From Rhodosorus marinus CCMP1338 (taxonomy: Eukaryota; Plantae; Rhodophyta): a stretch of DNA of 64,000 nt. Where the stretch lies: the NCBI GenBank assembly GCA_029953675.1, contig JAMWBK010000005.1:2914001-2978000 (forward strand), given 5' to 3'. How positions within the stretch are numbered: position 1 is the stretch's first letter; every line of letters starts with the position of its first letter. Shown piece by piece: positions 2,913 through 61,079 of the stretch. The notes under the pieces were generated by a model. That model saw only the letters and a list, made by a program, of their open reading frames with translations, did not search any database and was not told the origin of the DNA. A program made the translations under genes and the position numbers.

Positions 2913-3746
2913 ATGGAGTCTTACTGCGTTCAACAAGCGTTTACTGAGCTCCAGAGTTCACCTTGCCCTGTTCAGGACTCGGGAAAGACCCGTAGGTGCC
3001 TGCTCGATAAATAGAAACTGTTGAAAGCGCGATTGATGCTGAATCTCGTGTTTATTCCTGCGCAGTGATTGTGTTTGATTGGGATGACACGCTTCTTCCC
3101 TCAACCTTCTTGACATATGGCTGCGGGTTGCGAGTCTCGGACGATGTTCCAGTGCCCGAGGATGTGGGTGGGAGAATCGACCCAGTTGCGGAGGCGGCAG
3201 TGGAAGCTTTATCTATAGCGATGCAGCATGGGGACGTCGTGATCGTTACAAACGCGGAACATGGATGGGTGGAAATGTCTTCCGATAAATTCCTCCCTCG
3301 AATCAACCACTTCATTCGTGAAAACGGAATAACAGTCGTATCCGCGAGAAGCGCATTTGAGGAAGAGATACCAGATTCTCCTGTTGATTGGAAGATAGGA
3401 ACGTTTTCGCAACAGGTACAGTGCCACTGAAATACCAAAAAAAGAACTGCAAGCTTCCCTATCAGGCTCTCAAGATCTTGTCATTCGATGCGCTTGGACT
3501 TCCACGCAGGTGCAAAGCTCGGACCGCAAGAGTTATGACAACCTTGTGGTGATCGGCGACGATGAATGTGAACGATTGGCAGGTCATGCGATGTCCAGAA
3601 TTGCACCCTGTCTATCCATCAAGACGGTCAAGTTTGTGAGAAAACCAGAGCCAAGTCAGCTGGCTAGGCAGCTGGGCTTGTTGGCCCAATCTCTTTCAGA
3701 TCTTTGCGAGGAACAGGGAAACCACGACGTAAATTTCATTGTCTGA
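2913..3746 (+). CDS. HAD-superfamily hydrolase/phosphatase (DWDDT type), 3 exons
   Basis: Exons 2913-2991, 3066-3415 and 3510-3746 join in frame through GT-AG introns. Motifs: motif I TLIVFDWDDTLLP, motif II VIVTNAE, a motif III Lys (DWK) and motif IV LVVIGDDECE. Confidence 0.85.
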
Positions 3747-4158: not shown

Positions 4159-7100
4159 TCAGAGAACAGTCAACAACCTATAGACTTTTGACGCGAAGCC
4201 GCTCCACCTGGGCACACACCGAAACGCGGACGTGTGAGATGAACATCGCGCCTGGCCAAGAATGCCTCACTGACGATTTTCTTACCTCTCTTTTGCGGCT
4301 TCAGCCAGAGGCGGTCTACTCTTCATGCTCGAAAGAGCTCTGAAGTCCTCGAACGCAGAATCCCAAATGGCTCGCGGTGTCGTCGCAACTGAGTTCGTGC
4401 TCCGAAATCGTTTCGTGCACTCGTCTGATATAGGCCAGGGCCAAAAGTCTGGCTTGTACAAACCTCTATGGTGATTTTCACACCAGGCCCTGAGAGCTAA
4501 GAGGTAGCTCGACTGCAGAATTGTAGGGAATTCGTTCAACGTTAGACTCACGTTGGACTGCGTGCTGTCCTTTGGCTGGGACTCTTACCTTTCGATGATA
4601 GAACATGCTCATGGGAACCCGTCGATATAATCCGCTTTCAAGAGTGTTCGGGTCCAGGAACATGGTTCCATCGCCGGTGAGTAGAACCTAATTGTGGAGT
4701 CACAGAGCAACAAGCTCGGTCATGAGTAGGGGCAAGGTGTTTGACGGAGTATTATCAGATCAGCTGGAGAGACTCACTCTATTTCCGACTGTCTTGTATG
4801 TCACCAGCGGTAAGCGAGGGACGATATCGGGGGCTAGCTCGACGCTCCAGTGCATTGTTACGCGTCCGCTGTAGACATCTCGAAAAGCTTTGTTTCCGAC
4901 TCTCGGTGATCCGAACGTTGAAACCACAATTTCTTCAGGCCCGATGCCGAGCGACATTGAACAGTCCAAAGCGGCGAGTGTTGAGAGGCTGCCACCAAGG
5001 GAGTGACCCGTGAACAGAATCACCCTACGTTTGCGCTTGTACAACTCTTGAATGGAGTCAAGGACCTAGCAGAGCGGAATAGTTGGCGGGCTACTGACAG
5101 TTCCTTCCGCATCCGTGGTGTGTGGCATGTGGGACCCAAAAAATACCTTTGAGGCTACCCGCACATGGGCTGCCGCAAACCCTCGATGAACTTTGCTTTG
5201 TGCGAATCCAGGTATGTCGGAATAGCTCTCTGCCGTGAGGCTGCAAACTCTTCCAGTTCTCGTGGGCAGAAAACTATTCAACTTGCGCATGAGTATGCTC
5301 GCGTCAGTCCTCAGGTTTCGGAAACTCGAAGTACCACGGAAGGAGACGACAATACGATCGCACATGTCAACAACTAGGCAGTGCGTGTCCGCTTCTGTAT
5401 CCTGAATAAAGCTGTGCACCTTGAGGCTCGACATAGCCTGTGGCGGATCATCAGCGTTGAGTTGTGTGAAGTACTCGCATTACGCTAAGGAGCGTGTCTT
5501 CATTGCCTTGGTACTCTACGAACCTGTGTTTCTGTGAGCCTATGGTATTTTTCAGTTCCATAATAGTACGCCAACCACGCAAAGTTAAAAGCAACAACCT
5601 ATACCAAAACAACGGGTTCAGCGCGGGTCGAATGTGGCGAAAAGGGGGGAGGTGCAGCTGGTGTTGGGACAACCTACGTGCGTATCCATAATGAAGCAAG
5701 ATGCTGACACTTCTCCGAGCGATCTGCTATCGAATCTGTCCGGCTCCGTCCGTCGATAGGTCATGGGAGATGTTGAACTGTGACCAGGGGATAGCCAACC
5801 CTCGGTGGGCGGCGTTTGATCATGAATTTCAGGGTGAGGACATTTCTTCACCGGAAGCTTGAAGTATGCTTCGGTGGAGACATATGCAACGAGGAGAATA
5901 GCGAGCGCCGCCATGAAAACGGATGACACGTAAACCCATGTGGCAGGTGCTCCCACTCCTGAGCTGGCAACAAATATTGCGACATCGACGCCTGCGGAAA
6001 AAAAGGATTTGTTTGTTTAGCCTCTCAGCACATCTTCGGACCAGAAAGCGTGTAGAGGATCAAAAGCTTTCCTCTGAACATACCGTTAGGGATAAAAGCG
6101 AAATAGAGAGCGCCCAGGGTCCAACTCGTAATATAGAACATGAGGTTATGATATACAAAAAACCGGAATCCTATTTGCTTGGGTCGAAATTTCAAGTAGT
6201 CTACGTCCCGGAGAACTAGCCTCGTTTTGCGCATGCTATGGACGATCATTCCCGCGAGGATCAATTCGATTGCGGTAATTGTCAGTATACAAACGGCACC
6301 TGAAAGGAAATAGAATGTTTGGGGGTCATCTTCAGACTCTTGAGACAAGGTGCTTGACAAAACTTGACAGCAGAGGGTTGAAGGAACCCTATCCATGGCG
6401 CCCGATATGTTCAGACAGCTTACCTGTTGTGCTCCAGCCAACCTGCGTGTAAATTCGAAGCATTGGGATCCATGCCAGAAGGGGCAGATCCAGAGTGCGG
6501 ACGTGATACACCCAGAACACAACTTGCCGAGCCAACACGTAGAATACGACTGCTGCTAGCTTCGGTAGGCAAAACCACTTCGTGATTTTGTCGTCAAGGA
6601 TGCGAAAAGTGTGAGCAGAGGCCAGAAGGTAGAAGACGGTGACCCCAGCGAACGCGGTCTGCCGTATACTCTGCACAACAATGTACCACGTTTCGTGGAA
6701 GAGGTCGTCGTTGATACCTATGTAATCAGGACTGTCTTAGATACGCTAGGTCCATGGAGTGCGGGAACCAGTCTCACCTGTGCCGCTGATTCTTAGAGAA
6801 ATAATCACATCCGAAATGTTGATGTAAAAGACTGTGCATACAGCTAGGAGCAGGATCCATTTCTGCTCGGGTAGGATTTTGCCGTTGGAACGATTCCGGA
6901 ACAGCTGAAATCCGAAAACGGCCGAAATCACTATAGCAAGAACAAACGCAAGTACCCGGATCACCGCGCATCCAATATCAATCCAGAGCGGATAAACCGC
7001 GAAATACAAGGTCTGGAACTCCCCATTGATTTCTGTTTTTGTGGGATACGCATAGACTGTACATCCTAGAATCAACAGCAACAGCAAAAAGAAAGAGGCC

Positions 7101-7436
7101 ACCAGCGAGACAATCTGTCTCCACCGCATCGAGTAGTCAATATGGCTTGAGCCAATGACTTCCAGCTTTGTATAGTACTCCCTGTCCCTAAGAAGCGGGG
7201 CTCCTTCAACAAACTCATCATCCCCCTCAATCCAAGATATATGCCCGGTGGACAAGTGAAGCTCCTAAACAAGGCACCCAGAACTTAAACAAAGTCCAGA
7301 CACGGAAACGAACGGCAGAAAGTGAACTCACCTGACTCCCGTAAGCCATTCCGCTTGAACCCAGCCGCTTCCAGTCTTCCTGGTGATATTCCCCAGCCTC
7401 GTTCCGCCTCAAGTGTTTCAAGTCTACTCCATCCAT
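4159..7436 (-). CDS. Multi-pass membrane protein: TMEM181/Wntless-like TM domain fused to a C-terminal class-3 lipase domain (multi-exon)
   Basis: Lipase_3 motifs IVVSFRGTSS, VHRGF, LFTGHSLGG (nucleophile elbow), TFGSPRVGN, DIVPRLP and MFYH. The N-terminal half has about 7 hydrophobic segments with PEQKWILLL..FYIN and QTAF...FYLL..HTFR...FCLPK. The last exon (stop at 4159) is inferred from splice signals. Confidence 0.85.
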
Positions 7437-8654
7437 TCTTGACTAAATACACAGGGAAGCTAAACACCCCCCCCAAAAAAAAAACACCAACAGCTTCCCG
7501 AGGACTTGTCAACGACCACCTCTCACACCCAACCCCTCATCACTTTCTCATCCAAAGCCAGAATCTGCCCCAACCCCTCATATATCCCCAATCCTCGCCT
7601 AATAACCTCCTTTTCTTGGCCAAAGCGAACACGCCAATATTACCTCACACGATCAGAGCGACCGTTCGAAGACCAAATAAAAAAAAAACCTCTCAAGCAA
7701 TGTCATCCACCACAGTCAACTGTCAGACAACAAACGCCCCCCAAATCCTTTTCAACCAACAAGACAAAATAGTTCCTGTAATTTTATAATATTTTTCCGA
7801 ATATTCTCTCAACTCAATTTTGATCTTTATAATTATTATTCATTTTATTATATCTTGTACGAATGGTGAAAAGTGGAAGAATATTGATGAGCTTCGTTTT
7901 TGTTTCTGAAAAACATTTTGGATTTGATTGCTAAATTCAACGTTATTTGAAAAAATCGCTCGGAGGCTTTTTTCATCTGTCAGTAACCAACCAGAGCATA
8001 GTACCAATTGCACCGGAGAATTTGTTTAACAGAAGGTATAAGCCGTTCGGGTACTAACTAACCCTGAAGTTTGGATTGGTGTTTTGAGGACAAAGCGTTT
8101 TAGGGACAGTATTTTTGGTACGCTTTTGTTGTGGGACAGGGGTTGCAGCTGGCTCCTTGATGATTAAGCCAGATCAATCGATCGTATATGAAACGCGGCT
8201 GGATATCAACATCTCTACGGAGGACGCCTACACAAGCCGAACGGAACATGGGAACGGCGAGGAAGAAACTATTGATGACAACCGTTCGGACTCAAGCCGT
8301 GAAGGCTAGGCAGAGGATGAGTGGTGAAATTGCCCACAACCACATCGCGGGGTTTCGTAAAATTGCTCATGTGCGTTGGCAACGAGTTTTCAAGATGGCA
8401 GGGAGTGGCACTGCAGATAATCCCGTTGGCAAATGTCTATGTCATGAAAAACTGATTCTACGTGCAGTTAACGAGGATTGGGATCTTTCCTTCCCTATCC
8501 AAGCAAAGCGACCGAATTTAATGGGCAGGCCAATCCTCAACAACATTATTTCACTGGCTGGGGGGGACGTAAGCCGACCTATTTGGAATGTCTGGAACGG
8601 GGTTCGATGCCAGTGACCGCTGGTACGGTTGGGCAACATTCTGCCACAATTCAC

Positions 8655-10848
8655 TTACTCCACGCTTACTTCACGTTGATTATCGGCAAATTTTTGGACT
8701 GGTTTCGGTGTTTGAGTCAACGGAAGTTGCTCCCTAAGTTTCTTGTTCTGCAACGGGTCGTAGACAGAATGCTGTACACAAGCAGGGATGACCCTTCCTT
8801 GATCAGGTTGGGCCATGCCGTATGAACAGGCCTAGGAAGCGAGGACGGACGGATCATCAGCATAAACGTCAACTAATCTTGTTCTGCGCTCAGTCGGTTC
8901 CTACCTGGAGCCTCTCCTGAGTTTCACGTATCTTTGGGTCGGTGGCATCAATCCCGAGCTCCATTAACTCCCACGCGCTCTGCACGTTTTCTGCGTCCAT
9001 GAATCGATGCATCACGATGGTCAAGAACATTACGCCCTGGAATAGTACACGAACTCCACCAGCTCTCTTCAAGAATCGACCGAACCACATTGCGAACATC
9101 CCTAGATAATACGGTCTTCGGATGAGATGCCTGGCAGAAAACCGCAGCAGTGAAGCTATGGTGAGGAAGTGGTTCACAATTAAAGATGAAAAAAACACAC
9201 GTGCGCGACCCTGCGAACCTCAAAAACTTGATGAGCAGGAGTCGCGTTGGCATCACGAACGACCCGAAGTTCTTCGTGAACTCGTTCCTGATCTTTATGT
9301 CTTTCGGGTCCTCGTCGTCGAGCACGGGAACAAACTTACGGTTCTTAGTTTTCGAACCTGTCAAAATAAACATGAAAAGCGACTTTCAGGTTTATCGTTC
9401 CCTGTTCAACTAGCCCTCACAGTCCCTCAGCGGAATGTCGTGCACGGCATCCACATCTCTAATGATCTCCAAGCTGTCTTTGTTGGTGCCCTACCAACGA
9501 CGAAACCAATACACTGCCGGTTGCATCTAGAGTCACCCATTTGGAGAACCTTGTAGGGAAGCCTTGCTCCAACGCCTTTCTCAATTTCTTTCCACACGTC
9601 TTCCCCATCATTTTCGGCAACCTGTGGACGAAGGAACTACACCATAAACGACTGATTCGAAGATGAGAATCTGCTTCTGGTCTCGGAACTGTTGCTGACC
9701 TTTTTGTAATCTGCCGTCCACCTCCTCTGGTCCCCCTGGAACGCAGCGGGTTGGAAAGAAAACAGCCGAAACCCAGCGGTCAGGTTATCTTTCAAGACGC
9801 TCGCAATCTCGCCAACGTTCCCTGGCTGAACAGTCATGTTGTGGGCAACGAAGAAATCAACGTTGTGCTCCCGCTTCAGCCGCTTGAACTTTTCCAAGAG
9901 CTCCCTCCGATATGGATTAAGTTCTGCTTCGGAGTTGGGACTGCGAATTCCACTTCTTCCAACCTGCACGGATTGAAACTTGAGCGGTGAGACTCACCGA
10001 TCATCCTGAACTTTGCGGGTTGAATGGATAGTTAAGAGTATGCTCACCATAAATCTATCGAAGTGAACGGCGAAATCTAGTCTGTCAAACCTTCGCTTTC
10101 CATTCGGCCCCACGGCAACATCTTTTAGGTACTCATATGTAAAGTCACCATGGCTGAACGACATGGGAACACGCCCGTACTTCTTCATGATAGCTAGAGC
10201 TGTTGCATGATCCTCTGCAGAAAGCAGGGAAACCTGGTGAAGATGCGGAAATCGGTCAGTCAATGCTGCTCGATGAACCCTGAACGCTACTCTGGTGGTT
10301 ATGAGGGATTGTCCAACCTCTCCACCGATCAACTGACAATGCCCGTGTGGGCCTCGGTGCTCGTCCAGCACCTTCATCTGCCGGGCAGTTTCAATTGCAG
10401 TATGGATACCGTCGATGCGAACATGGTTTGCGTCGGCTGAGTGATAGCACGGTTTACAGGAGAACGTGCATTTGGGGAAAACTCCTTGCGTTCCCTCGCA
10501 TCCTGGTGAAACCTTTCCTGCTCCAAGTCGCCCAACAAGAAAGGGCATACCATAAGAACAACCATGTCGCGACGGGAGAGAACAAGAGAACAGGCTCTTA
10601 CCGAGCATCTGGCTTGGGCCCTTCACGCGCTCCGGCAAAGTCTCGTATCTCTGTCTAAGGAGCTGATTCGATCTATGCGACCCATCCGGCCTGGTTAGAT
10701 GCTCCCACTCGACAAATTGACTCCACCATGCAGGTGCATGAACCGACAAATTTGACCTCTGCCTACTGGTTCTTGACCTAGATCCTCCTTCCGACCCGCT
10801 TCCGCTCAAGATGGGTACAAAAGCATGCATCTTCTCCCCAGCCGCCAT
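8655..10848 (-). CDS. Radical SAM domain protein of bacterial type, intron-containing
   Basis: CxxxCxxC motif (CTFSCKPCYH), GGE motif (QLIGGEVSLL), and downstream AHNMTV, FSFQPAA, GDSRCNRQC, MHRFMDA and ERLQACSY...GRVIPACVQH. Split by several GT-AG introns. Confidence 0.85.
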
Positions 10849-10948
10849 CCTCACTCCGCCAACCTACAAGTTCAACCCTAGAAATCGCCCAGGGCCTCTG
10901 TGCACCTTCTCACCCTAACACGGTCAACTCCTGCCCTGGCACAGCCCA

Positions 10949-26442: not shown

Positions 26443-28676
<2,234 letters not shown>

Positions 28677-44869: not shown

Positions 44870-46979
44870 ATGTCCGCTAGCGATGACAATGAGGATAGAT
44901 GGCTTGGTGCTGACGAGGACCAGTTTTGGAACGGCAGTGATGAGGGCAGCTTGAGTGCAGCGAACCATGCTTGGGCGGATGAACTTGCATGGGGGGAGAA
45001 ATGGAAGGAGCTGGGAATCTCCGATGATGAAGGAAAAATTCTGAGCCTTGTGAGGTCGATCTCGAGGTATATTCGTCGACGACTTATTGCTCCGCGTGAG
45101 AATGATCAGAAAGAAGCCATGGTTGAGGTGAGGAAACCGTAGATTTTGATATGCACGAGGATCCCATCGCTCAACCTTGCTCTTTCGATCTCGACAGGGT
45201 TACCTAACTAAAGATCTTCTTCTAACTGTGAGCTACGACACTGACCTAGATGGATTACTCGAGAAGGTAACGCGGCGGGAGATCGCGGATGTTCTTTTAG
45301 ACACCTTAGCAAGAATCAGACAGTTTGACAACGATCGGGCCACTAACCTCATTCTGGAATCACTCTGCGTAACCTCCATTGCTGTCTTTATCGCAGTCTG
45401 GATCGAAGGGTAAGCGCCGCAATAAAGAAGGAAAGCAGTTTGCGAAGCGCTGACTCCACTTCCATTCTACAGGAAGGAGTACGGCCTGGAAGATTTGTCT
45501 AGTGTCTCGGAAGACATGATTCTCATGATGGGCAGATCGCCTCTTACCGAACCCAAAATGATTGTAGACGAGTTCAAACGTGCGTCTTCGTTCTCAGATG
45601 CCCCGGAAGTAGTGCTGCGACTTGGCTCAGGGTGGCCCAAGCTCAGCGAGATCCTGCTGCGAAGAATGGATGACGACTCCGTAGATAACTGCTTTCCGAT
45701 AATGATGAGCCTCTTCCGTAACAGCATGTACAGCAAGTTCAAGGACAATCCATCAGGGCCTTCACTTTTGGTCATCGGGATTGCCGGCTTCTGCAAGACG
45801 CACCTCAGTACCAAGTTCAGAGACCTATCGGTTCATGAGAAGCTGGTCGATCTCTCTTTCGATTTAATCGCCATAGCCCGCTCTGAGGAGATCGACTCGG
45901 ACGAAAATGGTGGCGTAGCTGGTGACTTGGCGCTTTCGCTCGCTAACAATGGCTACGATGGTTTGATTACGGTCCTACGCCACGCCCAGCAACGTTGCTA
46001 CATGCCGCCGCTTTCCCTCGGAGAGATGAACCTCCTACAGATCGAGCTAGCCAGGTTGAGACCTCAGCAAGCGGACACTAAGATACCAGCATTGCCACTG
46101 TGGAAGCTGAGGAACATCGCATTCTACGCATCGCTGACGCTGGGACCGCTGCGGCCTAAGCTCATTCCAGAGTATGACCTACTGCATCCAGAGATGCTGT
46201 GCAACCAAGTCTCACCGTACGCTTTTCAGCTCCTCGTGGAGAAGCCCGAGAGCTCGAGGATAACCGGTATACGAATCATGAAGATTCTGCTGGAAAACCT
46301 GGGCGAGAAAGGATTCAAACTGTCTTCTGAGAGTCTTCTGGACGGCTTCTCACACATCGCGATAGATCTGGCTAGTTTCTCGTACTCGAGGATGGCAGTG
46401 ACGATCGGGAACGTACTGCACGAGCTCCCCGGCGACAAGAAAGCTGAGGCGTCGTTAGTTTTAGAACTGCTTCTCAAATACGTTCCGCCGGGTATTGAGA
46501 GAGTTCTGCAGATCAAATCGATGGTCAACGAGTCGCAAGTGGTTGAAGAGATAACTCCCCTTTCCAGGATAGCTTTTGCACAGTTCTTGGAGAAGGAAAT
46601 CCACGGGATACGAGATGAGCACACTGAAGAATTGGCTAGGCACATTGTGAAAGGCCCGCTTGATCGCTGGTTGACACCGAGATTGGAGATGATGAAGGAG
46701 ATGGACATCGTCGTGGCCTTCCTCAAGGTTACGTCTTGTATACTCTCCCAAGGATGCCAAATCGAAGAAGCTTCAAAGCTCTGCGAGCTAGTCAGAGCTT
46801 GTTCCTCGCAGTTTGCAAGGTTGACAGAATCAGACATGAGAAACGCGCCAGAGGAAGCCAGAAGGCAGCCCACGCAAGCGAAAGAACGCGAAGCGCTATA
46901 CTTTGCTGCCAAGCAAACGCTGAGTACGTGCGTGGAAGCAATGGAAATAGTGAATTCTCCCTTTCAATTTCAAGCTTGA
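44870..46979 (+). CDS. Alpha-helical solenoid protein of about 650 aa, possibly glomulin/ALF4/Ybp family
   Basis: A 494-aa open last exon plus two upstream exons with GT-AG introns; Leu-rich helical composition. There is only a weak recalled resemblance to the glomulin C-terminal region (LHELP..KAEASLVLELLLKYVP..ERVLQIKSMVNES..AFAQFLEKEI). Confidence 0.55.
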
Positions 46980-47444: not shown

Positions 47445-50400
47445 TCAGACTAATTGCAAGGTACCGGGCAGGTGGAAGGAAGGCTCTAGGTAGTACTCTT
47501 CACATGGCGAAACAAGCAAAAGAGTCCAAACTCGTGGATATTTGATTCTTCCTACCTCAATAAGCTGAGCACTAGCATCTTCGTCAATGGGCTGAACTGA
47601 CACCATTGGACGGTCGGGGGCGTTCAGCACTACACGAAGCCGGCCTCGATCAACAACAGTCGAATTTGCGACTTTCGAATTGGCTTGGGCAAGCAAGTCC
47701 GAGTATTGCTACGGTGAGAAAAAACAACACGAAGTCAGAACTTATCACATGGGATGAAATCGGTTCATATCTGTAACTGGACTGGGGCTTACCTGATAAC
47801 GCTTTCTTTCAGCACGGTCTTCTTCCTTTCTAGAAAATTCCTTGAGCCTCTCGTAGTGCTCCAGTTTCATCTTGACGGTTTCCAGCTTGGTCTGCATGAC
47901 AATAGAAAAAAGCTTGTCGATTTCTTTAGCTTCCCTCTCGGCCTTCTTTCGACACCGAACAGCTGCTGCAGCGAGAGCAACTGCAGACGAGGCCGTTTCC
48001 ATAGAAGCCTCATCATCAAACTGATGTGGCAATCTTCCCCCGCCTGCAATGGATGCCTCCCTGGCCGACATCCTCTCCAATGCCGTCGCGCTCACCACCT
48101 CAGCGACGCCCTTCTGGAGAATGTCCTGAACCGTCGTATCCTGGGTAATCTGGTCACCCAGGCTCTCAGCCTTTTCCAAAGCCGATGCAGTTGTCCCCTT
48201 GGACACTGATGAAGGCACTGTGGACCCCATAAAGGCCAAATGGGCCATTAACGGATTGTTCATATCCGTAAACGGTAAAGGTTGCCCCGTCATGTCCCTC
48301 AAACCAGTTGCACCGACTCCGTAATCGTTCAAGGAAGCCTCTCTAGGCAGCTTTCCAATATCTTCCTTGAGAAAAGAGTCCTCGATTGGTAGACGAATGA
48401 ACTGCAGCACACAAGCGTCCTTTGATTTTGAACCGACGTGTTCTGCGACTAATTCCCAGTTGTCGCGATAAAGCTCCAGGGCTTCGAGGAGAAGCAGTGT
48501 CTCCGTTTCTGTCCACGATGTGGAATGGTGCCCTTCAACAGTAGACACCGCCGTCATTTGAATGAAGTCTCGAGAGGATATCGACTGTGGGAAGTTGCCG
48601 TCATTGTAGCACTCCGGGCAAAGGTCCATATCTGCCCTCGTCGAGCAGTGAAACCTCATGAGGCTGCAATCGCGTTCACAGCTATCGCAGTGGTACTCAA
48701 CAGCTGCAGCCGCGTCTTCACGATCCCGTGTTAGCCGACTGCCTTCATGACGAGCAAACTTCCCGTTCCTAATGACCGGACCTCCATCGTCGAAAAGCAG
48801 CATTTTCGGTCTCTTCTCTCCGGTCTCCAAGGATAGAGGCAACGGTGCAGGCGGCGGTACAATCATCGGCTGGGGTCTCGTCTGGGGGTCGACACCATGG
48901 TTGATCAGCCCCCAGTGCTCCAGGAACACGTGCACTCTCAAGATCGCGCAGGCGTCTCCGGCCAGATGCCTCCTTGCAAAAGTCGCCGACAGATACTTCT
49001 CCGGCGTTTTCCTCCATGATTCCACCATGAAGTTGCGATACTCTTTGTACACCTTTTCAGTCTTCGATTGATACTTCCCTCGAAAAAACTCAGGAAGCCC
49101 TCTTCGTTCAATGTCATGGACCGCGTGGGGTTTATACCATAGCGCGTACGAGGGTATTCTAATTGGAACCTTTGGTTGTGCCGGAGTGGTGGAAAGGTCT
49201 GCCATTTTCTTCGGCGACGTGAGATTAGCGGCAATGAGCGAAGGGCTCTTTGCGTCTTTGCCTATCTCAAGCTGCAAGTCCTCCTCTCCGTCCTTGGACG
49301 GTTCGATTGCGCTCTCCGTCGCAACGACCTGGGATGCAGTCAATGCTTTGTCATCCTCTTGTTCTTCCATCCTAGTGGTTTCGTTTAGCTTCTCAGAATC
49401 GGCGGAAGCAACAGGAGTCGCGACGACGCCCTCGACATGGACTTCTTTCTCCCCCAAGTCTGTTGGTGCTTCCCTCGTAAGCTTGATTCGTACCTTAAGC
49501 GAACCCGAAGAAATTCCCTGCGCTGTGCCTGGCTCTTCCGCATCTTCATTGACAGCGAGCGAATCCCCTCGCATTTCTTCCTTTCTTTCATCCCCACCTT
49601 CTTGCTTGTTATCAGCTGTACCCTCAGCCGACTTATCGCTCTTTGGCAAGCTGTGGTTCTCCTCCGAATCTGCGGCCAGTACCGCGGAACCCAGTCCAGT
49701 GAAGTCCCCTCCTATATCTCCTGACTTGCTTCTTAAGTTTTCGGAACTGAAAACAGTCTTAGTAGCCTTTTCGATTCCCTTCTCCTCGTCGGCTTCTGAT
49801 ACGGAGTCCAGCTTCCGCTTCCGTGATTCAGTTGTATCCGCCGTTGATTCCATGACATCGGATTCTTCCCCATGTGATGCAATCGTGCCGTCAGCTTCGA
49901 CAACGCTCCCTACAAGCTCCCCCTTTGATCGGGTCGACATGCTTTCGTTTGTGGAACGGCGAGGAGCTGGAATGACGTTGATCCGAAGATCTTCTGGAAC
50001 CTCATAGTCTACTTCGTTCATCCATTCGTTGAAACTGTCAGTATCTTGGATATACCTCATCTGCACATGCCAGGGTCCCTTTGGATTAGGATCTTCCGGC
50101 TCCATGTCGCCCTCAACATCTTCGATTGGGATCCATGAGTCGTAGCAGTCCGGATAGTACCACCAATGAACCTTCGAAAGCATTCCTCGTGTTTCAAGAC
50201 CTCGGCAAAAGTCCTCACCCTCCGTATCCTCGTGTCGTGTACCTTCCGGATCGGGGTAGATAATGTGAGTTGCGGCTGAGGAAGTTGAAACCACGACGCC
50301 GCGCTTTTTCAGAACAATAGAGCGCAGTTTCGGCTGCATATTCGCAGGGATTGCCCTGGTCAGGAATACTTTTCTCGAGCTCAAAAATCCACCTTGGCTA

Positions 50401-50810
50401 AGTGCAAGTTCGACGGCTGCCAGCATTTCAACTAATTGATCCGCTTTATCCGGATTCGACCACTCAAACTTCCGAATCATATTGTCCGCCTTCCACTTTA
50501 GCGCGGCACAGAGGATTGTCTCCAATCCACCATTTGGCTTGGTGTCTCTGAATACGCTACATGGAATCTTCGTCATCACCCGCAGCTCCTCGGCAGACTC
50601 CAAACCCAGCCTCACATCCATAAAGTTCATCATCCTTACCGACAAGAGCAGCAACGATCGAGGTGTGATATCCTTCGAATTAAACCCAAGAATATCATCG
50701 TCCTTGGACTTTATACTTTCACAAACACCGCTCAAGTCATCTCCAGTCCCAAGCTCCTCCCAAGATCTAAGACTCACCGCAACGCTCTTGGCCCGTCGCG
50801 GCGTATCCAT
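47445..50810 (-). CDS. SWI3: SWI/SNF complex subunit SWI3/SMARCC (BRCT/chromo N-module, SWIRM, ZZ zinc finger, SANT, coiled coil)
   Basis: SWIRM: IPSYALWY...IERRGLPEFF...LAGDACAILRVHVFLEHWGLIN. ZZ: CDSC..DCS..RFHC..DLCPECY. SANT: WTETETLLLLEALELYRDNWELVAEHVGSKSKDACVLQFIRLPIED. Chromo-like: VHWWYYPDCYDSWI. The 3' end is approximate. Confidence 0.95.
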
Positions 50811-51533
50811 CTTGCTATTTCCCTTCAGAAGAATAGGAGCTTCTAACTTACTCCTAAACAGAAAAACAAGAAGGCCGAAAAACAACTTGTCTAAGTTCGG
50901 CTTCTATGTCCTACGCCCTTCCCTTCTCTCCTCCTTCCCCGAAAAGTCAAAGAGCACTACAACTTCATAAGCACTTCATCGCCGTTACCCACAATGTAAC
51001 ATTCGCCAACGTTTTTGGCCAACAACAAAGCGCCAAAACGAGAGGGATCATAAAATAGCTACAAAACAAGAAATATTTAGGGAATACAAATCGTCCTAAA
51101 AAGAACTGAGTTTCTGATTCAATCTTTTCCATTTATTAGAGATTGACATTAATGATTAGTCCGTCTTAAAATTTGGTCGGTTTAAGTTGCCTTGGAGGGG
51201 GGCGCTGGTGAGTCTGTGGAATGGACGACACCTTGCAGTAAGTTGTTTGATTACGCTGAGCTCCTAAAAGTGCTTGAATGAGTCTCCCGATGTTCTCTAG
51301 AGCTTATTGTTCCCCCTGAGTAAGTGTTTTCAAAAAAAACATGGTTCGAAAGTGCGGCTCCCAAGTTTGGACGGAAGCACGGCGGAGGACCTGCTCATCC
51401 AATACACCTCGACATGATGAGAGTGAACGCTAGAGGTTCTCGGGTCTCCCGAAAAGGGATCTGAGGGGTTTGTGAAAGACGCGCCCTGTAGAGACTCCCC
51501 TCCCCTCCCATCTGCTGTTAGACTGCTCGTTCA

Positions 51534-52023: not shown

Positions 52024-52696
52024 TACCAGCCACAAAACCACCACACCATTCTCCCTTCCACCAAGTTCACAAGAAACTCTCAAAGGCCTCAGACCATCTC
52101 ACCGCTGGGGCCGCGGCGGCACGTACAAAAATCAGTCTATAGTCCGCTACCTATCCTTCTAAGAGCTTCCCCAAAAGCCTTCCCGAAAACCCCCATCCTA
52201 GTCTCACAATGAAACCGACACTCCTCATCCACATTCCCAACAGAAATCAATCAACTAAGACAGTCAATTTATATTCAATCCATAAAATCAATCATTATTT
52301 CGTGAGACCCCAGCGATGAACGTCTAAAACTTTTTATGGAAAAATATGAAATCTCCAAGGTTCAGGTTGTGAACGTGTGTTTTTTTCCCAGTTTTTGAGA
52401 GATGTTTTTTGCTTGTTTCGCAGCCGTGGTTTGGGGGAGTTTTTTGTCAAGAGGAAGAGTCTTTTTATGTCACTAGATGATGAGTTACTCCACTCTGAGA
52501 TTGGGGAGTGGGAGGGAGTGTTTCCTGTCATGATGGGTAACTCGCTGAATCTGAGTATATAAACGTGATCTGGATTTTTTTTTGGGAAGGGAAGGGGAGG
52601 AGAGGAGGCGGAGGAGGAAGGGGTTCGGCTGAGGATTTTTTTTGGGAAGGTTCTTGTGAGGGGAGTGAGCGTGAAGGGAGGGGGGGAGGGGGAACC

Positions 52697-54568
52697 ATGA
52701 GTGCGTTTGTGAATGGACCCGTGTTTTTGAGCCGTGGGCGAGGGTTTGCTGCTGGGTCGAGGAGGCGAGCAGCAAGGATTGTTTGTACGGCGACTCCTCC
52801 AGTGAAGGTTGGGGCTGATGTTGATTCCAGAGTTGAGGCGGGGAAGGCGCTGTCTGCGCAGGGGGTGGAGAGGGTGAGGTTTGCGCCCTCGCCTACTGGG
52901 GCCCTTCATGTTGGAGGTGCGAGAACGGCGTTGTATAACTGGTTGCACGCAAAGGCAAATAATGGGAAGGTTCTTCTGAGGGTTGAGGATACGGATCAGG
53001 CAAGATCTACAAGAGAATCTGAAAACGCGGTTCTTAGGGATTTGAGATGGCTTGGAATTGACTTCGATGAGGGACCTGATGCCATGGGCGGAGAGGCTGG
53101 TCCGTATCGACAGTCAGAGAGAGGTGACATATATGTTGAACTGGCCAATCGATTGCTTGAATCCGGGCATGCCTACCCATGCTTTTGTACAGAGGAGGAG
53201 CTTGACATGAAGCGAAAGCAGGCAGAGGCAGAAGGCCGGCCACCACAGTACGATGGTACCTGGAGGGATGCTGACCCTGCTGAGGTAAAACGCAGGATGG
53301 ATGCAGGAGAAACCTACACGGTTCGGTTCAAGATTCCTGACAATACAACAATAGCGATTGACGATATTGTTCGAGGAGAGGTTGAGTGGGACGCAAACGC
53401 CACTGTTGGAGACTTCATTTTGTTGCGTAGCACTGGAGTTCCAGTCTACAACTTCTGCGTAGCCGTCGATGATGCGCTGATGGGGATCACTACGGTGATC
53501 CGAGCGGAGGAGCATTTGACTAATTCGTTGAGACAGATACTAATTCTGAATGCCCTTGGCTTCCCGGTACCAAAGTATGCTCACTGCTCGTTGATTCTCG
53601 GAAGCGATCGGTCGAAGCTTTCGAAGCGACACGGGGCCACCTCTTGTGACCAGTTCCGACTGGATGGATACCTGCCAAATGCAATGGTTAACTATCTGGC
53701 GCTCTTGGGCTGGAATGACGGTACCACGAAGGTATGAAACCGCTGAAAATTTCAGAGTATTTATGTCTACCATCCATGCCTCCCTTACGTCTTTGCTAAA
53801 CCAGAAATTTCTGCTTCTGTTGACTTCAAAAGGAGTTGTACTTTACACCAGAGGAGGTTGTAGAAAGCTTCGATTTAAATCGCGTTGGACCATCCCCAAC
53901 CATGTTTGACTCGGACAAGCTCATTTGGATCAATGGCCAGCATCTGCGGGCATTGCCCGTGGAAGAACTTGCACCGATGGCAAGGGATCATCTTGTGGAT
54001 CAAGAATTGCTCGACCCGTCCGTAGAGAGCGACTCTGAGCTGAGCATGTTCATTGCGGGCATGTTCCAAGGAAGTATGAGTCTGGTCAATGACGTTGCAA
54101 CAGAGTTTCAAGGTGCCCTGGGCTTCCCAGTTGAGGAATGCATTTCAACTGGAGAGGCAAGTGAGCTGCTGGAAGACGACGGAGGGTTCAAGGTCATTGC
54201 AGAGAGCATTTTGTCGGCGTACGATGCGGGAGAGTTTCCCAACGGGAGCTCTGATGACCACGCTGCGGAATGGAAGGCATGGGTGAAAGCTCTCGGAAAG
54301 GAAACGAAACGTAAAGGTAAATTAGATTGAGCTCGAATCGCCTTGCAAACTGACTCGTCATCCGCCTAATGCTGTTGCTTTCTTACTCTGCTCAATAGGG
54401 AAGAAGCTCTTCCATCCTATTCGCCTGGCCCTAACCGGCAAAATGAGCGGGCCTGATGTTGGGCAGGTGGTGAAGCTCTTGCATATTACCGAAGGGGTCG
54501 CTCCTAACCGCGTCTCGCTCGCGGAGAGAATCGACACGCTGCGGGAGGTGGTAGCAGCGAAATATTAG
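52697..54568 (+). CDS. gltX: Glutamyl-tRNA synthetase, organellar (plastid-targeted), 3 exons
   Basis: VRFAPSPTGALHVGG (HIGH), LRVEDTDQAR, GPYRQSER, YNFCVAVDD, VIRAEEHLTN, KLSKR (KMSKS), LALLGW and the anticodon domain KGKKLFHPIRLALTG. Transit peptide MSAFVNGP... Confidence 0.97.
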
Positions 54569-57885: not shown

Positions 57886-59673
57886 TTAGAGGATTTGCAA
57901 CTGTTTTCCTATACGTTCGTACTCTTCGGTTTGTCTCTTCAACTGCTGCTGAAGGTCGTCAAGCTCTGCCTGCAAATTGTAGAAATCCTGAAGCGGATGA
58001 GTGTTCTGCGTCAAGTTAGCTATATATTCAAGACACGCTCTTGAATGTACCCTGCGAGAACTCACGGTTATGAAACCTCCTGAAACCTGGTCTTTCCCTT
58101 CATTCTCTGATTTCGGCTCCTCCTTTCCTCGCATCCTGCTTCTTCTGTGGAAATGTGCAATTTTTCGCAGAAGAATTTGTTGGGAGAGGAGAAGCTGCGT
58201 TCCACTTTCGTGCAGTTCCCACTGCTTCTCAACGGTTTGCCTCGCGTTCAAGCCGGCTTTGCTTTCGTCCATTGTTCTGAGGTGGTTACAGTGCACGTTA
58301 TCAGTTTGCGCTCGCCACTGTCCGTGTTCGATTCCTCAAAAGGTCTTACCTTGCCCCTAAACTCTCAGAAATTCCAAGTCTGCTCGGCGAACAGCGGAAC
58401 TTTTGCATGCCAGAGCAGTCTCGTCCGGCAAATTCAGACGCATCAGTCTTTGACTTCCGCAGGTTATTCCGGAACTTTTGCAGGTGGCTCTTGACATGCT
58501 CCGTTGTTAAGCCCTTTACATCCATAATCTCAAGGATAGTCTTGGGAACTGCATTCTCAATTCCCGCTACGTTCACTGCTCGAAGGAACCGCTCGTGGAG
58601 ATCCTGCGTCCACACCAGCCTCTTCTTGATGGAGATTGTTCTTTGCGCATTTTCCATCGCACTCTGCAATGTGGACAAACGCAAAAAGTTAGATTCGTCA
58701 AGCAAGGTTCAGCGGTTTTCGGATGTAGCTAGCCTACCTCCAGGCTCCTCGTGCCAGCTTGCTCTTGAGCCTCTGAGTTTTCCTCTGGTTGGGCCAGTTC
58801 TTGCCGAGGGGGCAATTTGGGGCTGCTCAGTTTTGCGCTTGTGCTTGTATCAGATCGAATTTCAACAATCATTCGCGACATGGCCTGGTCTTCGAGGGAC
58901 CTTCGGCTCCGTCGACCCAAAAATTCGTCCCCTACGGACGACGGCAAAGCTGGGCAGCACGCCCGCGAACTTTCTTCATTTTGGCTTGGTGCCCGCGACT
59001 GTGGATTTCTAGGTCTTGCTTTCCCTTCATAATCAGACGGCTTGGCAGCCTTGACCCTCTGTGCACCCGGCTGCTCAAGTTTTTGACCGCTCATCGCTGG
59101 CCTCTTTCCAGTCTCAAGCAAAGGGCGCTCTCTCGGGAGGGGAACATTGCACTCCCCAAAGCACTTGTCACGCATTTGTCTAGTGTCGTTCAAACCCTTT
59201 TGCTCCAGATGATTCGACGCATCCAAACCAAGCATTTCGTCCTCCCCAAGGCACCCGCCAGCATCCCTCGCGAGTCCGGTCCCCAGCGACCTATTCTCAT
59301 CATCCCTCAACGGAACATTGAACTCCTCAAAGAACTTGTCACGAATTTGTCTCGTATCGTTCAAGCCCTTTTGCTCCGGATTATTCCAAGCATCCAAACC
59401 GCCAACATCCCTCACGAGCCCGTTCCCCAACCACATATTCTCATCATCCCTCAACTCATTCGGGGTACTGAGCAGAAACATATCCCCGACTTCCTGTACG
59501 GGAACAGTCTCTTCCGACGCTTCCCTGGCCCACTCATTATTCATTTCCATCAACCTGGTCTCTTTTCTCAACTCCGACGCTCCGGTTACGACCGAAGCGC
59601 TATTTTCTACCGACTGCCTCAAGCTTTCAAGCTTCATATGCACGTCCACCTCAAACTCACCCCCCAATTTCAT
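57886..59673 (-). CDS. GARP/G2-like MYB transcription factor (SHLQKF) with C-terminal coiled coil (multi-exon)
   Basis: KKRLVWTQDLHERFLRAVNVAGIENAVPKTILEIMDVKGLTTEHVKSHLQKFR, with downstream QWELHESG..QQ and LQAELDDLQQQLK segments. The 3' end is approximate. Confidence 0.85.
59146..59460 (-). repeat. Intragenic tandem duplication (about 144 and 171 bp) in the GARP gene N-terminus
   Basis: Encodes LRDDENMWLGNGLVRDVGG-LDAWNNPEQKGLNDTRQIRDKFFEEFNVP and LRDDENRSLGTGLARDAGGCLGEDEMLGLDASNHLEQKGLNDTRQMRDKCFGECNVP. Confidence 0.9.
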
Positions 59674-61079
59674 CACGCACTCTCCACCCGGCACCCCCTT
59701 CTCCTCTCTCGAAACACAACAACAAAAAGACTTCCTCCCACTTGCCCCGCAGTGCAGTCCCCTCCAAGAAAAAAACACCTCACAACTCTTTCACATCACT
59801 TGCCAAGGTCATTACAAACGCCAAAACTATCTTTTCAAGCAACCACCAGCACGCTCCCCAACCCCCAACCCCCAACCCCTTATCAGCTACCCTCAATGAC
59901 CCCATAGCTAATCCTCCATCGTCCGTATGCTCAACTCAGCACTCAGTTTCACCCCTTCTTCCGTCTTCATCAAAATCAGATAATAAAATGGAATCCTTCG
60001 CAAACCCCGCCCCCCCCCTCCCTTTTTCCAATCCACCCCTCTTCTCCCCATCTTTTTTGGTTCGGAGAGCACTCGTGGGCAGATCACAGCTTTTTCACAT
60101 GTTCCTGACCCCCCCCCCCCCAAGCCCACCCCTAATCCAATTTTTTTCAATGACGAGGCGACGGCCAAAAAGTAATAAATCTTCTTTCCTTTCATTGACG
60201 ATATGGTTTTCGTCCTTATTTTTTCCTGCTTTCAGATTGGCATTCTCATAGTAGATTAGAGACATGACTGGCATAAATATTACTGTTATTCACTACTTGT
60301 TGAGGTCCAAAGGTTCGTATTTGGTACGCAGAAACCCACATTCAGAAGACAAAGACAATATTTCAATGAGAAAGTTTATTTTACTTATTTTAGAGTGGTT
60401 TACTATCTTAAATTTGGTATAGATGGATAGTTTTCGAAATGTTGTTTTCCGACAGCATGGGGGAGGAAGGAACGGCGTGTGGAGGGAGGGGGGGGTATGA
60501 AAACCGGAAGGAACGAATCTAATGCATAGTTTTCTTCCCCCTCAAAAAGTTTTGGAGGAAAATTAGATTTGCTAGCTCTTATTTGATTTCTTGTCTCCAT
60601 TATGGAATCTTTCTTGCTGAGGCTTTTTTTCAATGGTTTCCATTGCATTATTAATATCTAGTTTTATTCAATGTTTGGTGTAAGAGGCTAGATCCTTTGA
60701 AATGTAAAAAAAAAAAGGTTTGGGAGGGGGTGAGGCGGTTAGGGTTTCCTAGCCTAAGTAGAAATCGCCAAGTCCCCAAATAGATTGTTGATTGCTACTC
60801 TTTGCGGTGGTTGAGATTATCATCTTGGATGGGGCGGGGCAAAAACTCCATCCCGCAGTGTTGAAGAGGCTAAGGAGCTCAGATGCATTGTGGAGGTTCC
60901 ATTGTAGTGCAGTGCGTAGTTAGGTATATCTCAGGCTGAAGGAAGTGCACTAAGGTATGACTAAGGCAAGAATGCAGCCTGTTCAACCTCCTTCCCGGTC
61001 GTCGTTTCATTTCATTCGTTCCTGAACGGCGGAGGTGTGGGTGCTTGGTTTGGTCTGGATCTGCGCCTGGCCACTAGGT

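Follow-up and report, generated by a model that had tools for sequence, protein, structure and literature searches.

Wntless (WLS/Evi/MIG-14) and TMEM181 belong to the family PF06664 (WLS-like_TM) and to the GOST group of membrane proteins, which includes WLS, TMEM181, TMEM87, GPR107/108, GPR180 and TMEM145. In GOST proteins, a GOLD beta-sandwich is located directly ahead of a seven-transmembrane (7TM) bundle; Wntless has one leading transmembrane (TM) helix, and its GOLD domain is luminal and about 200 residues long. All but the shortest of the WLS entries listed carry the GOLD profile PF21883. Wnt itself is metazoan. A membrane anchor of another kind is found in DAGL-alpha/beta, sn-1 diacylglycerol lipases with an N-terminal block of four TM helices and a cytosolic Lipase_3 domain acting on membrane lipid. 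The fungal class-3 lipases (Rhizomucor miehei, Rhizopus, Thermomyces), Aspergillus feruloyl esterase A and plant phospholipases A1 (PLA1; DAD1-like/DSEL) are soluble or secreted single-domain proteins or, in plants, plastid-targeted, and none of them has a polytopic membrane domain. The gene described here is found in a 64,000-nucleotide stretch of DNA (below, the window) from Rhodosorus marinus CCMP1338 (contig JAMWBK010000005.1, positions 2,914,001 to 2,978,000), a red alga and an organism without Wnt. Unlike these soluble enzymes, its product joins a polytopic membrane domain to a class-3 lipase.

As in Wntless and TMEM181, the membrane domain of the algal protein consists of one leading helix and a 7TM bundle; it differs from both in the fused C-terminal lipase, and from Wntless and the other GOST proteins in the absence of a GOLD domain, a hairpin standing in its place. 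The best functional analogy is DAGL-alpha/beta, since the algal protein likewise comprises a TM block and a predicted cytosolic Lipase_3 domain. The two lipase domains are likened by their shared family, PF01764, whereas the four helices of DAGL are unrelated to PF06664 and the algal protein has eight helices in a different fold; a first-pass annotation of this DNA, made from the sequence alone, was thus right to set the architecture apart from that of DAGL. With a probability of roughly 70%, the locus is a single nuclear gene for an integral-membrane class-3 (fungal-type) acylhydrolase, in which a remote WLS-like_TM domain of eight helices is combined with an intact lipase predicted to be cytosolic.

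The gene occupies the minus strand from 7436 to 4282. Open reading frames (ORFs) joined in silico give 10 exons in one frame, encoding a 799-amino-acid (aa) protein, with the start ATG at 7436 (codon 7436–7434) and the stop codon at 4284–4282; the nine introns are all GT-AG and have 60–124 nt each. The protein begins with a disordered N-terminus and eight TM helices (1 + 7); a linker then leads to a class-3 lipase whose Ser-Asp-His triad is intact. The first-pass annotation had reported such a fusion, in an alga, at 4159–7436. The algal origin, the presence of both parts in one gene (a single frame, with colinear homologues) and the start at 7436 are all confirmed, while the coding sequence ends at 4282; judging by the position of the stop, the 123 bases at 4159–4281 on the same strand are non-coding and presumably represent the 3′ untranslated region (UTR). 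The peptides it had quoted from the membrane half are all encoded on the minus strand: KILPEQKWILLLAVCTVFYIN in exon 2, QSIRQTAFAGVTVFYLLASAHTFR...KWFCLPK in exon 3 and VLRDVDYLKFR in exon 4.

The splice junctions are supported by homologues. P0001 (UniRef A0A7S2ZIM2), a protein from a Rhodosorus marinus transcriptome, is 89% identical to the window protein and shares its start and first three junctions; the later junctions rebuild the family motifs FxMxTHV|xxFN, YxxVGxx|xxLxxxGxxxxDP and Hxx|xxY. In tblastn, proteins of the family match the window colinearly between 7246 and 4390, and no further match and no second copy of the gene were found with family members elsewhere in the window. Exon 7 (5147–5437) has two candidate AG acceptors, both in frame and separated by 36 nt (5438–5473, minus strand). 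The acceptor at 5437 gives 799 aa and exactly the 26-residue spacing between YYYGT and DTH seen in the family; the upstream acceptor, 5473, gives 811 aa by inserting YFTQLNADDPPQ. The former is preferred because the 12 extra residues have no counterpart in any family member, and residue numbers refer to the 799-aa model; the second acceptor is a possible alternative splice site. Reading through the exon 9 donor (ORF 4478–4663) was rejected, since the conserved HxxxxY motif is then lost.

The C-terminal half matches PF01764 (Lipase_3) with 91.8 bits against a cut-off of 22 (E = 4.6e-26), over positions 1–138 of the 140 in the profile. The lipase module opens in exon 5 (5678–5991) with the motifs PxxYRxRE and FxMxTH, as judged by consensus motifs and the predicted local distance difference test (pLDDT). 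Exon 6 (5524–5598) encodes VVAFNFAWLAYYYGTEKYHRLTETQ, the conserved helix preceding the lipase domain (FNxxWxxYY), and exon 7 the N-terminal half of the Lipase_3 domain (DRIVVSFRGT, HRGF). The catalytic core lies in exon 8 (4778–5065), with Ser616 in GHSLGG (codon 5002–5000) and Asp674 in DIVP (codon 4828–4826); in the alignment with Rhizomucor miehei lipase 1tgl, these correspond to its Ser144 and Asp203 motifs. Exon 9 (4589–4687) completes the alpha/beta fold and supplies the catalytic His721 (codon 4597–4595); this residue is within the family-wide HxxxxY motif (FYHRKSSY), which arises only by splicing of exon 9 to exon 10. The coding part of exon 10 (4282–4512) contributes C-terminal helices past the lipase fold and a low-confidence tail. 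GHSLGG, DIVP and the C-terminal His are thus all present as first annotated.

The closest catalytic domains, with the same GHSLGG, DIVP and His, are those of the fungal class-3 lipases, feruloyl esterase A and plant PLA1. Relatives of the lipase half among PDB sequences include Rhizopus, Rhizomucor and Thermomyces lipases, Aspergillus diacylglycerol lipase, feruloyl esterase A and plant PLA1, with E-values down to 3e-11. An AlphaFold model of the full-length protein, run (AF2) on the 811-aa variant, whose extra residues fall in a loop, has a pLDDT of 84.8 and a predicted TM-score (pTM) of 0.84, with most of the lipase region above pLDDT 90. In Foldseek comparisons, the lipase domain matches 1tgl, 3tgl, 1tic, 6a0w and 1usw with E = 1e-10 to 1e-8 and target-normalised TM-scores of 0.62–0.68. 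Among about 50 family members covering the respective columns, the triad is kept in 51 (Ser), 46 (Asp) and 46 (His), and GHSLG is nearly invariant. By its sequence, the C-terminal half has a complete Ser-Asp-His catalytic triad and is a class-3 lipase and predicted acyl-ester hydrolase. EDS1/PAD4 also appear among the sequence and fold matches, and a non-catalytic, lipase-like domain of this kind would serve protein interaction or signalling only. The top matches, however, are active fungal lipases, and a dead EDS1-like domain is very unlikely, its chance being close to nil, because the triad is conserved and the fold matches that of fungal class-3 lipases.

The N-terminal half is encoded by exons 1–5. 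Exon 1 (7332–7436) has a GTGAGT donor and, with start and junction the same in P0001, encodes residues 1–35, a part of the disordered cytosolic N-terminus; in the full-length model, pLDDT is below 50 over residues 1–61. Exon 2 (6778–7264), with junctions confirmed by P0001, contains the remainder of the N-terminus, TM1 (residues 76–104), a luminal beta-hairpin (107–124), TM2 (128–162) and TM3 (167–197), which bears the EQKW motif. TM4 (203–234), cytosolic loop 2 (HTFRIL...FCLPK), TM5 (244–268) and a short luminal helix are encoded in exon 3 (6424–6717), whose junction with exon 4 is also confirmed by P0001. Exon 4 (6084–6299) comprises TM6 (294–327), cytosolic loop 3 with DYLKFRPKQIGFRFF, and TM7 (334–364); exon 5 continues with a luminal helix, TM8 (391–411) and a low-confidence linker (about 420–440), before the lipase module. 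Where about seven TM helices had been reported, hydropathy and AlphaFold agree on eight (1 + 7), of which seven form the 7TM bundle. The AlphaFold model of the TM domain, built from 31 family sequences and the source of these helix limits, is of high confidence (pLDDT 90.5, pTM 0.89).

The gap of about 23 residues between TM1 and TM2 forms the 18-residue beta-hairpin, and in Pfam searches the window protein has no match to PF21883. Most relatives, like the window protein, have about 25–35 residues at this position, the site of the GOLD domain in Wntless. Inserts of very roughly 100–250 residues are present there in P0013, P0022, P0023, P0024, P0026, P0027, P0041 and P0047; in the long-insert paralogues P0023, P0026 and P0041, neither PF21883 nor any other Pfam family was matched within the insert.

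Within the TM domain, the best conserved residues gather on the predicted cytosolic side, where the mean top-residue frequency of the three loops is 0.42–0.57, against 0.14–0.40 for the luminal loops. About 28 of the 37 TM-domain positions with at least 70% conservation are within or beside the cytosolic loops (EQxW, HSYRxL...FYxPK and T..L..Y...R.KQ.GFRFF). E168, Q169 and W171 of EQKW are conserved at 87–100% in the family, and DYLKFRPKQIGFRFF is the most conserved stretch of the domain. The family consensus for cytosolic loop 2 is HSYRxL...FYxPK. At several such sites (residues 184–185, 229, 234–235 and 247; window positions 6710–6570 and 6850–6800, minus strand), the window protein deviates from its relatives: NP is replaced by NI at residues 184–185 (Pro is 97% conserved), Trp229 by Leu (Trp is 87% conserved), HSYR by HTFR and FYxPK by FCLPK. 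The R. marinus orthologue P0001 has FYLPK, so the Cys in the window protein is a very recent change.

The relationship of this domain to Wntless and TMEM181 can be traced through its homologues. Of the 65 homologues scanned with Pfam, 18 match PF06664 (best E = 3.9e-9), and it is the one TM family to come up repeatedly. The matches are colinear over most of the profile (3–215, 4–230 and 12–246 of 247 positions). In the Pyropia protein P0031, the PF06664 match reaches 34.4 bits against a gathering score of 28.3 (profile positions 4–213 of 247), alongside a Lipase_3 match with E = 4.6e-29; the same protein is found by phmmer from the window TM region, with E = 1.3e-12. Alignments to WLS made with hhalign keep their register across TM2–TM5, with the R-rich loop/E-x-x-x/N-P, FY-W and P-F motifs paired. 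A Foldseek search with the TM model returns 7TM receptors in general, with WLS chain 7kc4_B at rank 6 (E = 5.8e-3, 311 aligned columns); its query-normalised TM-score of 0.49 is the highest among the top ten hits. Of the two proteins, the direct sequence and structure comparisons covered WLS.

Several observations weigh against the proposed reading. The window protein itself has no match to PF06664 in Pfam at E ≤ 10, with either the full protein or the TM region alone as query. With hhalign, the family alignment gives E = 0.23 against human WLS (a sequence identical to 7drt_B) and E = 0.14 against 23 WLS orthologues, neither of which is significant. An hmmsearch of PDB sequences with the family's hidden Markov model found no WLS chain, and the Foldseek E-values for WLS are no better than those for taste receptors and class-A G protein-coupled receptors (GPCRs). 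As regards the gene model, P0001, the only transcript fragment from the same genus, covers exons 1–4 and ends in intron 4. The sole PDB match of the family profile, cytochrome oxidase subunit 2, was discarded as spurious.

The points concerning the membrane domain would be expected if it were a GPCR-like 7TM domain with no specific tie to Wntless or TMEM181. The protein would then be a receptor–lipase ‘bigram’ in which ligand sensing controls a cytosolic lipase. Such fusions of a 7TM domain to a C-terminal lipid enzyme are a known theme: GPCR-PIPK and other protist 7TM–enzyme ‘bigrams’ have an N-terminal 7TM domain and a cytosolic C-terminal lipid enzyme, as does the algal protein, although GPCR-PIPK has another 7TM family and a kinase rather than a hydrolase (PMC12716839). 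TAS2R14 and class-A/B/F GPCRs also stand at the top of the Foldseek results, with E-values equal to or better than that of WLS. On the other hand, no TM family but PF06664 is matched repeatedly by the homologues, the coverage of its profile is colinear and nearly full-length, and one member exceeds the curated cut-off; the additional helix ahead of the bundle corresponds to the WLS topology, WLS has the highest query-normalised TM-score of the top ten, and even the weak hhalign alignment is in register. A generic receptor–lipase fusion is therefore unlikely, though it deserves consideration. The TM domain is better read, on sequence evidence that is transitive through homologues, as belonging genuinely, if remotely, to the WLS-like_TM superfamily, without a GOLD domain. 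The Wntless/TMEM181 affinity first proposed thus appears to stand at the level of the family and of the 1 + 7 layout; the window protein on its own has no such match, the direct sequence comparisons with WLS fall short of significance, and in the structural comparison of the confident 1 + 7 bundle WLS stands sixth amid generic GPCR folds.

The truncated transcript bears on the other question, whether adjacent genes for a TM protein and a lipase could have been falsely joined by in silico splicing. In favour of such an artefact are the end of P0001 just past exon 4, the lack of a full-length transcript for the locus and the presence in databases of several homologues that are TM-only fragments. 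The C-terminus of P0001 (...FIPNGRFR), however, is the translated start of intron 4 (window 6083–6070: GMFRG), and its contig is either an intron-retaining mRNA or truncated; the TM-only entries, too, stop either in read-through sequence or where their contigs end and, from their sequences, look like fragments or intron read-throughs. Within the window, TM8, the linker and the first lipase-module motifs, PxxYRxRE and FxMxTH, are held in one uninterrupted frame (6016–5621), that of exon 5. The TM region alone, used as the query in an exhaustive phmmer search, finds 80 relatives; word-indexed homologue searches returned one match with the TM region and three with the family alignment, hydrophobic words saturating the candidate list. 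Most relatives longer than 600 aa have a GxSxG motif about 420 residues downstream of EQxW, and Pfam finds Lipase_3 in 43 of the 65 relatives scanned. One of these relatives, P0028, is from an Erythrolobus transcriptome (MMETSP1354); its TM region is accompanied by Lipase_3, which shows that at least one relative carries the fusion in its mRNA. Since single homologous proteins map colinearly over both halves and 43 of the 65 carry Lipase_3, one gene is the favoured model, and a false junction of two is very improbable. Retention of intron 4 would give a lipase-less protein ending past TM7.

The orientation of this fusion protein in the membrane can be predicted from its charges. Clusters of Lys and Arg, located by comparing the sequence with the modelled helices, precede TM1 (MRWRQ), occupy the loops TM2–TM3 (FRNRSNGK), TM4–TM5 (RILDDKITKWFCLPK) and TM6–TM7 (RKTRLVLRDVDYLKFRPKQIGFR), and follow TM8 (KLPVKK); the alternate loops have few. 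According to the positive-inside rule, this distribution predicts an N-in/C-in orientation, the same as in Wntless, and hence a cytosolic lipase. The conserved motifs of the TM domain are on the same, cytosolic, face as the predicted lipase, and the full-length pTM of 0.84 suggests, as far as the model goes, a fixed packing of the two domains. The following arrangement and role are proposed on this basis. The lipase is likely to dock onto the cytosolic loops of the bundle, where conservation in the 7TM domain is highest. Its substrates would be membrane glycerolipids (diacylglycerol, phospholipid or glycolipid), whose acyl esters it would cleave, probably at the sn-1 position, on the cytosolic leaflet of either the plasma membrane or an endomembrane; the 7TM domain may act as an anchor and as a substrate-access or regulatory module.

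A different mechanism follows the lipid-binding carrier plus deacylase suggested in the first-pass annotation: an acyl chain, belonging to a lipid or to a lipidated protein, would be bound in the 7TM cavity, much as the palmitoleate of Wnt is bound by WLS, and be passed on to the fused hydrolase for removal. The family-level tie to WLS-like_TM, the strict conservation of the fusion with an intact triad and the tight domain coupling implied by the high full-length pTM are all consistent with such a carrier-plus-deacylase, and in solved structures the cavities of GOST-type proteins are open to the membrane and hold lipid (PMC9711517). In WLS and TMEM87A, however, the lipid-holding cavity opens to the luminal or outer (extracellular) leaflet (PMC9711517), whereas the algal lipase is predicted to be cytosolic. 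The GOLD domain, the proposed holder of the solvent-exposed part of the cargo, is also missing, conservation lies on the cytosolic loops and not on luminal or cavity-facing parts, and no cargo candidate is known. The carrier-plus-deacylase is therefore quite unlikely; a DAGL-like integral-membrane acylhydrolase is the better fit to the predicted topology than a luminal system of that kind.

The fusion is conserved in red algae and is also present in at least one green alga, the streptophyte Chlorokybus atmophyticus. Among the red algae, Porphyra umbilicalis and Porphyridium purpureum each have at least three paralogues, and further named members are from Pyropia vietnamensis, Porphyridium aerugineum and Erythrolobus madagascarensis. 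A 2025 survey detected neither Wntless nor TMEM181 even in choanoflagellates (PMC12716839), which makes the occurrence of the WLS-like_TM family in red and streptophyte algae a notable extension of its range. Both domains are already known, and their fusion family sits in databases without a description, its members labelled automatically as, for example, ‘Fungal lipase-type domain-containing protein’, ‘Phospholipase A1-II 1’ or ‘Lipase’; at least one member (P0031) would carry both Pfam domain annotations. No description of the fusion turned up in full-text searches covering TMEM181/Wntless and lipase, PF06664, Wntless-like or WLS-like proteins with a class-3 lipase, and GPCR bigrams with lipase. 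The locus had been put forward as a candidate undescribed system, and this holds for the literature searched, while its members have already been deposited as lipases.

If the acylhydrolase reading is correct, the family would represent a second independent construction of an integral-membrane class-3 lipase, besides the four-helix DAGL, with no member characterised so far. It would also place a WLS/TMEM181-like membrane domain in Archaeplastida, which bears on the origin of the Wnt-secretion chaperone. A conserved domain fusion is a classic functional clue and would here tie a poorly understood 7TM fold to acyl-ester chemistry, and a single polypeptide with an assayable enzyme would be a tractable system for studying such domains. 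The protein may be relevant to lipid remodelling and oil turnover in red algae. A broader evolutionary proposal is doubtful and offered tentatively: the Wntless/TMEM181-type 7TM fold might predate animals and have begun as a lipid-handling module presenting acyl lipids or acylated cargo to a coupled hydrolase, the binding of palmitoleate by WLS being a later re-use of the cavity. On that view, the algal fusion would be a ‘Rosetta stone’ for a lipid-related function of the uncharacterised TMEM181 and perhaps of other GOST proteins.

The window is ordinary eukaryotic nuclear DNA with a GC content of about 46–52%, in which no tRNA genes were found. A convergent gene on the plus strand at 3065–3746, a provisional join of two ORFs, ends about 540 bp from the stop of the lipase gene; its product begins with MIVFDWDDTLLPS, a DxDxT-like phosphatase motif, and later contains VVIGDD, and it has no Pfam family at threshold (HAD, E = 1.8). 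The ORFs at 45495–46979, 9994–10854 and 58729–59778 have no Pfam match. Other neighbours are ordinary housekeeping genes, each in a long single-exon stretch: HSP70, on the minus strand at 26592–28364 (E = 1e-237); a SWI3/SMARCC-type protein with SWIRM, ZZ and SANT domains, on the minus strand at 47745–50885; and a protein with a Glu/Gln-tRNA synthetase catalytic domain, on the plus strand at 52565–53737. About 30 nt upstream of the start codon of the lipase fusion gene, at 7467–7484, there is a homopolymer tract that reads C8 and then A10 on the plus strand, T10 G8 on the strand of the gene. A C/A-rich low-complexity stretch continues to about 7760 and is followed by an AT-rich block at 7760–7990; the sequence upstream of the start is probably the 5′ UTR and promoter region.

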